Source: Macrostomum lignano
Taxonomy: Eukaryota
Reading direction: 5' to 3'
DNA length: 64,000 nucleotides
Assembly (NCBI GenBank): GCA_002269645.1
Contig: NIVC01000932.1
Coordinates: forward strand, 124,001 to 188,000
This document shows positions 25,401 to 34,349 of the stretch, piece by piece. The notes under the pieces were generated by a model. The model did not search any database. It was given only the letters and a program-made list of their open reading frames with translations, and was not told the DNA's origin. Every line of letters starts with the position of its first letter. Position 1 is the first letter of the stretch. A program made the position numbers and the translations under genes.

Positions 25401-28400
25401 GCTTGATTGGCTGCGGCAAGCAAGCTCGAAAGAGCTCGCTTCGCTCGCTCTTTCTCGCTATCTACCATCTATTGCCAGGACCTGCACCGGAGCGGTTACG
25501 AAAATTAGATTTCTCGGTAGTTGCTCGCACTCTTTTGCACTACTTGAGTAGTCTGATTTTCGTTCGGCAGCTGGTTCCAGCAGGTAGTTCCTCTGGATAA
25601 AAGCGCTTACCGCGCCCATTGGCTTTCCAGCTGCCTTAATCGTTTCCGGTGATCTTGTGTGCGTGCTTTCAGCTTGATTGGCTGCGGCAAGCAAGCTCGA
25701 AAGAGCTCGCTTCGCTCGCTCTTTCTCGCTATCTACTATCTATCTATCTATCTATCTATCTATCTATCTATCTATCTATCTATCTATCTATCTATCATCT
25801 ATCTATCTATCTATCTATCATCCATCTGAACAGCCGTACGCAGCCTTCAGATGCGCAGCGCAATAGCTGCGGTTGACTGTCGGTTGCACATCTGGCCCAA
25901 TTTTTGTATATTAGATATAAGAGTGTATATGAGTGCGCGCCTGAATTGGAATCAGGGAGCCAGGGTGTCTGCAGCCCTGCTGCACAATTAACAATTACAA
26001 TTGTTCCTCTCTTCATACAATAGATATTAAACCACTCCGGCTGAGTGGTTATATATTCCGGGCAAGGCTGATGCCGGCCTTTGGATTGTGCAGCCTAAGT
26101 TCGCGCCCGAGCCACAAGACGCGCCTTAGTCTGCGTGTACAGCTGCCCGTCGTGAGAGCCATAGACTACAAGCTTTAAGACCGCAGTGAACTCAACCTTT
26201 GTATTCATGCCATTTTCATCCCTTGGAACCATAGACATCCTGCTTTCCCACGGGTAAACCCCCCCCCGACGGACAGCTAAAGTTTAACCATAGACAAAAA
26301 TCGATTAAGTAAAATCTGACTAGAAATACACTATGGATATAGGAAGAGATCAAATTCAGAGGAAAAACCGCGGCACTCCCTCAAGCAGTTAAAGCCGTGA
26401 TTTTCTCCCGTAAGTATCAAATTTGCCAATCACCTGACAGAGTCGCCGTCGATCGCTGCCGTCAGGTCTCGAACCACCACTTCGGTCTCGCCGGCCCGAG
26501 AGCGCAGCTTGAGCTGGCGGGAGACCTCGGCCTTGTCCAGGTAAACTATCACCGACCGCACGGGACAGTCCGGTCCGCTGAGCTCCACTAGGGGCGGTCC
26601 GTCTTCCAGCGCTGGGACAGGCGGATCCGTAGCCTCAGTCGGCTCTGGCGCGGGGTCGGCCTCCAATTCCTCGGTCGGCGCCAATTCGGCAGCGGCGACC
26701 TGCTGCGTTGGCAGTGGAGACGGCAGCGGCGGCAGCGGTGACGGCGGCGCCGGCTGCGACAGCCTCAATGGCTCGTCGGATTCCTCCGGCGGCTCGGAGG
26801 CGTCTGTATCGGCGTTCACGTCGGTGTCGGGTCCGTTGTCGACGAGGACCTCCTCGGCTACTGCGGCTTCCACCGCGGCTGCACTGCTGTTCATCCTGGC
26901 CTGGTCGGTCGCTGGTTGGTGGCTGGCGGACGTCGAGACGCTGCACGCCGAGGATTATAAGGGTGGGGGGATTTTGCAGCGCAGGAAGAGGATAAATATC
27001 CCAAAGATCGGGTCAGGCAGGGTCGCAGCCCCTGGACCAATGGTGGGGTCGCTAGTGGGGATGGATAGCTCCGGCAGTCCGGCCAGTCAGCGTATGCCGC
27101 AGCGCAAAGGAGCTGGCTAGGGGCGGGGGGATTAGCGCTAGGCTAGTCCCGCTTCAAGATAAGCGGCCGCCCTCTGCCTCCATCCTCCATCTCCATCCCA
27201 GAGGCTGAGGCAGCACGAGTGACTGAATGAGATGCAGATGGTGCCTGCGAGTGCGGCTTCTTTTTCTAGCGATGGCGGGGATTCAGAAACTGGAGAGGGA
27301 CAGAGAGAGAGAGGGAAACAGAGCCCTGGAAACCATGCGGAGTGGATGGAGCACAGAAATGCGCCAAGCACAGCTGCTTGCTTTTGGCCAAGCCGGCTTG
27401 ATAAATGAGCACACATTTGGAGCTATTGCTGGTGCAGCTGCGCTATGTCTGGCATCGAGCCAAAACTGCCTCCTTTGGCCCTTCCTTCCGACTACGATTC
27501 GCCTTTGGGATGAGGGGATGGGGGATAATTTAAATTCGCATCCCAGTCCTCGCTAACGGCGGCTTCCATCTGCCAGAAAACACTCCACTCTGTTCGGCTG
27601 TGTCACGGACTAGAGGCCACCATCCATCAGATTATCTAATTATGAGTGCACAAATATTAGCCACTAATCCACTCCAGCGGTCTCTTGTTGTTTTCCGTGA
27701 AGGCATCTATTTGGATTATTTATTCTGTAATTAGCTGTCTGCAGGGCACAGTGACCACAACTGAACTGCTGACTGCATTAGCATTGACTAATCAGCACCA
27801 CTGTGTAGCAAACAGAGCTGGGATCGGATTAACCTCTGGCGCCCCGGTGACATGCATCTATTCACTGTCCTTGCGTTCACGTCATCTGATACTATTACGG
27901 TACCTCACAGTCTCCCAGATCTGGGAGGCTGGCCCAGCAACTGAGGATCTGGGAGGCTGGCCCACCAACTGAGGATCTGGGAAGCTGGCCCAGAAACTGA
28001 GGATCTGGGAGGCTGGCTCAGCTGCTGAGGATCTGGGATCTGGGAGGCTGGCTCAGCTGCTGAAGATCTGGGAGGCTGGTCCAGCAACTGAGGATCTGGG
28101 AGGCTGGCCCACCAACTGAGGATCTGGGAGGCTGGCCCGGCAACCATGGGGATCTGGGAGGCTGGCCCAGCAACTGAGGACCTGGGAGGCTGGCCCAGCA
28201 ACTGAGGATCTGGGAGGCTGGCTCAGCTGCTGAGGATCTGGGAGGCTGGCCCAGCAACTGAGGATCTGGGAGGCTGGCCCAGTAACTGAGGATCTGGGAG
28301 GCTAGCCCAGCAACTGAGGATCTGGGAGGCTGGCCCAGCAACTGAGGATCTGGGAGGCTGGCCCAGCAGCTGACACTCTGGTTAGGCTGGGCCAGCAACT

Positions 28401-34349: not shown

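Follow-up and report, generated by a model that had tools for sequence, protein, structure and literature searches.

The question raised by this locus is whether a conserved DUF4140/DUF4139 protein of the flatworm Macrostomum lignano is extended at its N-terminus by several hundred acidic residues encoded by tandem repeats, and how such an extension could have arisen. We analyzed a window of 64,000 nt (contig NIVC01000932.1, positions 124,001 to 188,000); all coordinates below are positions in this 64-kb window, and the gene lies on its minus strand. An initial annotation of this DNA had joined a long stop-free exon to the DUF4140 exon and proposed that minisatellites grew within the coding sequence. 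We conclude that a lineage-specific expansion of coding minisatellites has probably given this protein its long acidic arm, and we infer that the corresponding long mRNA is made and translated.

The first exon and its predicted join to the DUF4140 exon

The gene model was built with the M. lignano paralogue PAA74828.1 (816 aa) as guide. It comprises nine exons with GT-AG borders at all introns and a coding sequence of 4167 nt, and predicts a protein of 1388 aa; a form beginning at the internal ATG at 26894 would have 655 aa. Exon 1 runs from an ATG at 34349 to 32197 on the minus strand and contains 2153 nt (717 codons plus 2 bases) without a stop, compared with 7–68 stops in each of the five other frames. 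An in-frame stop is located immediately upstream of 34397, that is 5′ of the ATG. The exon ends at GGA CG/GTGAGT (the slash marks the splice site) in phase 2, and this terminal site is the sole consensus GT[AG]AG donor within it. Exon 2 follows the acceptor GTGCAG/C with its first base at 26940: CG plus C yields Arg, and the junction peptide RRPEGR/VSTSASHQP is in frame with the ATG at 26894. The parts of exon 1 and the adjoining features are as follows.

34251–34349, minus strand: start of exon 1; ATG and a 33-aa non-repeat leader with a second Met at residue 27
33441–34250, minus strand: array A; 27 units of 30 bp (10 aa) grading through unit variants, net charge −74, 4 Lys/Arg
33201–33440, minus strand: array B; 10 units of 24 bp (8 aa), EPQPEE[S/P]E, 50% Glu, no basic residue
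33111–33200, minus strand: 30-aa non-repeat link between arrays B and C
32682–33110, minus strand: array C; 13 units of 33 bp (11 aa)
32197–32681, minus strand: non-repeat tail of exon 1, in which 32558 to 32197 is a module common to the paralogue Mlig004911
26941–32196, minus strand: intron 1, 5256 nt, with non-coding arrays ((ACAG)n, 28-mers and an 18-mer)
26434–26940, minus strand: exon 2, which aligns with the second exon of the paralogue; a Pro/Ala/acidic stretch of 130 aa ahead of the domain, the presumed ancestral ATG at 26894, and the start of DUF4140 at about 26552

Re-reading the sequence returned the coordinates and phase that the initial annotation had given for the 2153-nt exon and its CG/GTGAGT donor, as well as its junction peptide after the CAG acceptor at 26941; for this join, comparative support now comes from the paralogue. 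Its lengths needed correction. The N-terminal extension, put at about 830 aa, is present, with 733 aa before the internal Met and 847 aa before DUF4140, and the pre-domain stretch of exon 2 amounts to 130 aa instead of about 110.

The decisive evidence for the predicted join is the homology of the tail to the coding exon 1 of the paralogue. The N-terminus of PAA74828.1, running to EDHLTALPVPSRPPPPPP, can be aligned to the non-repeat sequence that closes the acidic exon, and the module is marked by LYPE, an acidic run and LTALP-PPPPPPP. The likeness is detected by tblastn (1.4e-5), by phmmer (2.7e-18) and by blastn (76% DNA identity over 109 nt). Over 109 codons the ratio of non-synonymous to synonymous substitution rates (dN/dS) between the paralogues is ∼0.45, and a 15-codon core of the module carries 5 synonymous and 2 non-synonymous differences. 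The splice site is shared as well: intron 1 of the paralogue starts at GAC CG/GTGAGA in phase 2 and spans 4.9 kb before the DUF4140 exon, as compared to GGA CG/GTGAGT, phase 2 and 5.3 kb in the window. A partial sister model (P0174) has 43 codons of 5′ untranslated region (UTR) that are continuous with the genome upstream of the paralogue ATG; the 5′ UTR is continuous with the module exon, which is therefore the first exon of the paralogue. The paralogue is one of the BOX15 (Mlig_3_7) gene models, for which RNA-seq data and assembled transcriptomes served as the basis (PMC5730564). As judged by these comparisons, the module is the conserved first coding exon of a Macrostomum subfamily, and we infer the splice in the window gene from it.

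Other observations carry less. The match of reading frames at the junction is weak by itself (∼1 in 6) because just 15 codons lie between the acceptor and the ATG at 26894. Shuffling leaves the 161-codon non-repeat tail free of stops in 3% of cases. Three older UniProt models of M. lignano (P0001, P0004 and P0005) cross from the first exon into the second, two of them (P0004 and P0005) including array sequence; all three carry frameshifts of the kind typical of an error-prone assembly. P0001 has an exon with 100% identity to the window, which identifies the DNA as M. lignano. A query composed of the exon tail and the DUF4140 exons matched M. lignano proteins only (five, in a result swamped by low-complexity words), and the homology query was repeated without the poly-Glu and poly-Pro runs. 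A 105-codon open reading frame (ORF) in another frame (32372–32689, minus strand) overlaps the module region and is the source of the frameshifted stretches in P0004 and P0005.

The wording of a fusion, used in the initial annotation, does not fit these results. For the tail, the only homologous sequence is the first exon within its own gene family, and leader, array units and linkers matched none of 5.8 billion proteins. A two-gene fusion was thus rejected in favor of growth in place inside an existing first exon.

Three in-frame arrays

Tandem arrays were called with Tandem Repeats Finder (TRF). Within exon 1 it reports array A with a period of 30 bp (33419–34255, 27.9 copies), array B with 24 bp (33190–33440, 10.5 copies) and array C with 33 bp (32664–33113, 13.6 copies), each with 0% indels. 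The initial annotation had listed units of 24, 33 and 27 bp as multiples of three; the first two and the divisibility stand, and the 27-bp unit is replaced by one of 30 bp. Units of 30, 24 and 33 bp within one ORF agree with the unit length of a coding minisatellite. The ORF is intact over three arrays, two linkers and the tail, and array C is open in the coding frame alone on its strand. Methionine occurs in exon 1 only at residues 1 and 27 and next at residue 734, in exon 2. With no Met between, translation of the conserved module therefore means that the start must precede the arrays and that reading must pass through them.

Divisibility by three had also been taken as a sign of selection on the reading frame. 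The arrays in the introns of the gene are indeed mostly of other periods (2/15 are divisible by 3). Across the window, 14 of the 45 arrays outside exon 1 (31%) have a period divisible by 3, and the statistical support from the exon arrays, all three of which are divisible, is modest (P ∼0.03); the differences between units, given below with the alternatives, are mostly non-synonymous and do not point to frame selection. Units within an array are 92–98% identical to each other, and the arrays look young and unconstrained at the residue level. When leader, array units and linkers were used as query, no match was found in 5.8 billion proteins, and the array DNA has no likeness elsewhere in the window or in the paralogue locus. 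The old models P0004 and P0005 hold differing amounts of array sequence, their source assembly being error-prone.

Predicted properties of the protein

The 1388-aa model matches both Pfam domains of the family, DUF4140 (PF13600) at residues 848–944 with 55.3 bits (cut-off 27) and DUF4139 (PF13598) at residues 1044–1376 with 132.7 bits (cut-off 31.8), and it gives a full-length match to TIGR02231, the MuiA family (341.9 bits, cut-off 112.6, profile positions 2–522 of 524). The exon 1 product contains 31% Asp + Glu and 4% Lys + Arg, with a net charge of −193. Neither a signal peptide nor a hydrophobic run was found in the exon 1 product, which would place the protein in the cytosol or nucleus and makes an adhesive role, one of those suggested initially, unlikely; on these grounds we rejected an adhesive or secreted function of the arm.

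We modeled the arm with AlphaFold2 (AF2) from the single sequence, a weak test since it was folded without alignment. Arrays A and B gave predicted local distance difference test (pLDDT) values of 30–49 and no secondary structure. Together with the absence of arrays from the paralogue, this agrees with the initial proposal that an acidic arm predicted to be disordered grew by in-frame minisatellite expansion. Array C and its flank (residues 414–592) were modeled as a single long helix with pLDDT 70–76, and in the 11-residue unit Val and Leu line up along one stripe. Array C may thus be helical; a continuous helix is doubtful, as there is a Pro in every unit. For the core, the prediction (pLDDT 87.3, predicted TM-score 0.75) shows beta domains and an antiparallel hairpin of two helices of ∼50 residues each. 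No PDB relative of the core was found by sequence or by Foldseek with the core model at E ≤ 1e-3. The core bears a weak likeness (TM-score below 0.2) to AcrA/MacA-type adaptors and to the AP-2 mu subunit, and we accepted neither as a relative. A literature search for DUF4139, F37C4.5 and Mlig004911 yielded no paper with the family in its title or abstract, as judged from the search listings, and the matching papers mention DUF4139 or F37C4.5 one to four times.

Paralogues and family members

The closest comparison is provided by the Mlig004911 paralogue (BOX15_Mlig004911g2/g1; PAA74828.1, 816 aa; PAA78583.1), which shows ∼50% identity to the window protein over the aligned part. Both genes have the module in the first exon, followed by DUF4140, the hairpin and the DUF4139 core, and they agree in the position, phase, CG/GTGAG donor and approximate length of intron 1. 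The paralogue differs in that it lacks the arrays: its protein begins 12 residues ahead of the DRII motif. In exon 2 of the paralogue, the stretch before the domain is also shorter (∼45 aa versus 130 aa), and the 3′ part of the gene contains more introns. In the third M. lignano paralogue, Mlig000294g3 (631 aa), no module exon was found within 10 kb upstream. The 140-aa N-terminal module is present in two of the three M. lignano paralogue groups.

The wider family was surveyed with the 150 best representatives of 10,396 matches at E ≤ 1e-3. Members of the MuiA/F37C4.5 family occur from bacteria to animals, and the window protein shares with them both domains and the full-length profile match. 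Among these best 150, the median length is 570 aa compared to 1388 aa for the window protein, and the VxVYxDRAxV motif is preceded by a lead of 27 aa in the median and of 550 aa at most, compared to 847 aa. DUF4139 orthologues of three parasitic flatworms, Paragonimus westermani (KAF8569680.1, 1173 aa), Cichlidogyrus casuarinus (KAL3314128.1, 988 aa) and Hymenolepis diminuta (VUZ42798.1, 890 aa), resemble the window protein in having acidic, apparently non-globular arms of ∼210–550 aa before DUF4140. Unlike those of the window gene, these arms are not tandem-repetitive, and they have no similarity to the Macrostomum module or arrays. Long N-terminal arms thus recur among flatworm members of the family, and the statement of the initial annotation that the family has no such tail was too strong, given these arms and the 140-aa module in the paralogues.

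Alternative explanations

Several points weigh against the long arm as the product of this gene, and they are set here against the explanations that they favor. One is that a short isoform dominates, i.e. that the 655-aa protein is made from ATG 26894 via an internal promoter or spliced-leader (SL) trans-splicing near 26941–27325 and exon 1 is rarely used, which we consider rather unlikely. This ATG has been retained in exon 2 and aligns with the start Met of Mlig000294g3 as well as with the usual N-terminus of the family (median lead of 27 aa). Trans-splicing of an SL affects 30% of M. lignano genes and uses an acceptor motif [T/C]TNCAG (PMC8629364); two sites of this type immediately precede 27289 and 27325 on the minus strand, 350–385 nt before exon 2. 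A comparison of synonymous and non-synonymous changes between units gave no sign of purifying selection within the arrays (58 non-synonymous versus 10 synonymous differences between adjacent units). However, a cis donor upstream of an acceptor favors cis-splicing (PMC8629364), and an intact consensus donor (32196) is available 5.3 kb upstream of the acceptor at 26941; the module, moreover, has been kept as coding sequence in the same phase between the paralogues. The sites at 27289 and 27325 are poor alternatives because cis-splicing of exon 1 to 27289 would lead to a stop after two codons and mRNAs starting at 27289 or 27325 would bear a short upstream ORF at ∼27196. The acceptor at 26941 itself reads GTGCAG and departs from the SL motif at the first position; the motif discriminates poorly, since several of the ordinary internal acceptors in this gene do not fit it either. 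A short isoform alongside the long form is quite possible; as the sole product it is less likely.

The same lack of constraint would be expected if exon 1 were a former coding first exon that is now decaying, with selection gone, arrays growing neutrally and the frame open through youth and chance periods. The likeness between units indicates that the arrays are young, the excess of non-synonymous differences and the share of window arrays divisible by 3 agree with this explanation, and a probability of ∼0.03 is not negligible. Arrays A and B are moreover largely open in a second frame. The window gene has no protein in the searched transcript-based Mlig_3_7/NCBI protein set and is represented only by old frameshift-ridden models, which may in part be ab initio predictions; its absence from that set is probably due to repeats breaking transcript assemblies. 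We nevertheless regard decay as quite improbable, considering the 717 stop-free codons against the many stops in the other frames, the perfect donor, the conserved module core, and three independent arrays that have remained free of indels and share one frame with two linkers. A lower probability still is given to the arrays being removed or bypassed, through a hidden intron in exon 1 or another 5′ exon joining just upstream of the module. Such a route is suggested by P0004, which skips arrays B and C (from array A at ∼33447 to ∼32580), and by P0005, which leaps from the arrays to the module, but exon 1 has no internal consensus donor and no Met downstream of the arrays, and the jumps may just as well stem from collapsed repeats or copy-number differences in these frameshift-ridden models of an error-prone assembly. 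Finally, array lengths or the adjacency of arrays and module could be artefacts: the genome is hard to assemble owing to its simple repeats (PMC5730564), and copy numbers of long arrays are error-prone. We think this extremely improbable as the models of an independent earlier assembly also put EPQPEEQF-type arrays directly before the module and exon 2, and the arrays are internally regular with unique flanks.

Proposed history of the arm

Taking the coding-minisatellite expansion as the preferred explanation, we propose the following course of events. The ancestral start would have been located in exon 2 at the Met encoded by ATG 26894, ∼27 residues ahead of the domain, a start shared by most animals and one M. 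lignano paralogue. An upstream exon for an acidic, Pro-rich module of ∼140 aa, spliced in phase 2, would then have been added in the Macrostomum lineage before the split of the two paralogues. In the copy studied here, the 30-, 24- and 33-bp minisatellites would subsequently have grown in frame in the 5′ part of exon 1, likely by replication slippage or unequal exchange, adding ∼520 residues. The predicted outcome is the 1388-aa product with an 847-residue polyanionic N-terminal arm. Rather than being a sequence-specific domain, the arm may, as our best guess, serve as a cytosolic spacer or 'entropic bristle' in front of a conserved docking module, one that is nearly neutral and tolerated.

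A more functional version would see exon 1 as a tuning region in which selection keeps the arrays open and copy number sets the length and charge of the arm; we give this little credence. Within such a scheme array C might form a proline-punctuated amphipathic helix of the apolipoprotein, late embryogenesis abundant (LEA) or perilipin kind, its 11-mer pattern being reminiscent of the repeats in these proteins. Beside the array arm, the sequence SPSTEFDSL fits an acidic F-x-x-L pattern resembling an LC3-interacting region (LIR). If the arm were tuned in this way, functional differences among copies and individuals would be expected, and SPSTEFDSL would offer the first handle on binding partners of the MuiA/F37C4.5 family in animal cells.

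Remaining exons and genomic context

The domains of the protein are distributed over the remaining exons, which were assigned as follows.

24527–24761, minus strand: exon 3; end of DUF4140 and first hairpin helix
23285–23472, minus strand: exon 4; second hairpin helix
20169–20298, minus strand: exon 5; start of DUF4139
19922–20070, minus strand: exon 6
16714–16861, minus strand: exon 7; low-complexity internal loop with a poly-Gln run; the least certain exon, its support being confined to the old model P0003 and to consistent frame and splice sites
14770–15006, minus strand: exon 8; DUF4139 core
10475–10894, minus strand: exon 9; last coding exon, stop TAG at 10477–10475

Exon 9 (139 codons) is a single exon here and is split into three or four exons in the paralogue Mlig004911 (L001, 31055–33271), so introns have been lost or gained between the two genes. 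In intron 1, an (ACAG)n tract of 86 copies (31815–32160) starts ∼37 nt past the exon 1 donor. Intron 2 contains a 271-bp duplication bracketed by two (TCTA)n tracts, the whole lying at 24933–25827.

The window as a whole is rich in repeats. Its 48 tandem arrays occupy 28.2 kb, or 44% of the sequence, and the 15% reported for simple and tandem repeats across the M. lignano genome (PMC5730564) is far below this value. Nearly all introns of the gene described here and of its neighbor contain at least one long array. This neighbor, located upstream on the same strand, is a multi-exon gene for CAPS, the calcium-dependent secretion activator (41056–62949, minus strand), with Pfam matches to C2_CAPS (51376–51732 and 50437–50958) and MUN (43109–43612 and 41056–41484) and with introns full of minisatellites. 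The 3′ end of the CAPS gene may lie in an AT-rich stretch at ∼36230 that contains AATAAA signals. We also considered whether exon 1 could be the 3′ end of the CAPS gene and rejected this, as exon 1 has its own ATG preceded by an in-frame stop and ∼1.8 kb of non-coding sequence lies between the genes. CAPS proteins normally carry a PH domain, which was not among the Pfam matches of the CAPS gene in the window. The old model P0004 (UniProt A0A1I8JNM3, 448 residues) is named 'PH domain-containing protein' although it is without a PH domain, and the name may stem from an earlier read-through model.

At the other end of the window, two arrays with 161-bp units (6543–7298 and 8286–8742) are mutual reverse complements, with arms of up to 457 nt at 100% complementarity. 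The ∼1 kb between them holds two ORFs (7356–7784 and 7975–8328), and the first of these, 7356–7784, has no Pfam match. From its sequence, the pair looks like a foldback or terminal inverted repeat (TIR)-type mobile element with tandem-array ends.

Significance and comparison with known systems

The locus offers a clean and datable case of protein growth by minisatellite expansion. Three successive stages are represented by proteins of 631, 816 and 1388 aa, namely the paralogue without the exon, the paralogue without arrays and the window gene, and typical animal orthologues serve as reference. It illustrates that in a repeat-rich genome a conserved protein can gain hundreds of disordered residues within one exon, and that annotation may lose first exons that bear repeats. 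The conserved Macrostomum module with its sharp motif is a possible way into the function of a widespread family of unknown function.

Coding minisatellites, or variable number tandem repeats (VNTRs), in disordered regions are already well known; the value of this case is illustrative and not conceptual, and it is neat without being unprecedented. Involucrin, with its Gln/Glu-rich units of 10 residues, the mucins and the yeast FLO adhesins are VNTR proteins of this kind. The window protein has no sequence relationship to any of them, and it differs from a secreted mucin or adhesin in being without a signal peptide. What it has in common with involucrin, mucins and FLO proteins is the principle of construction: repeat units divisible by three within an ORF give rise to low-complexity segments of the encoded protein.

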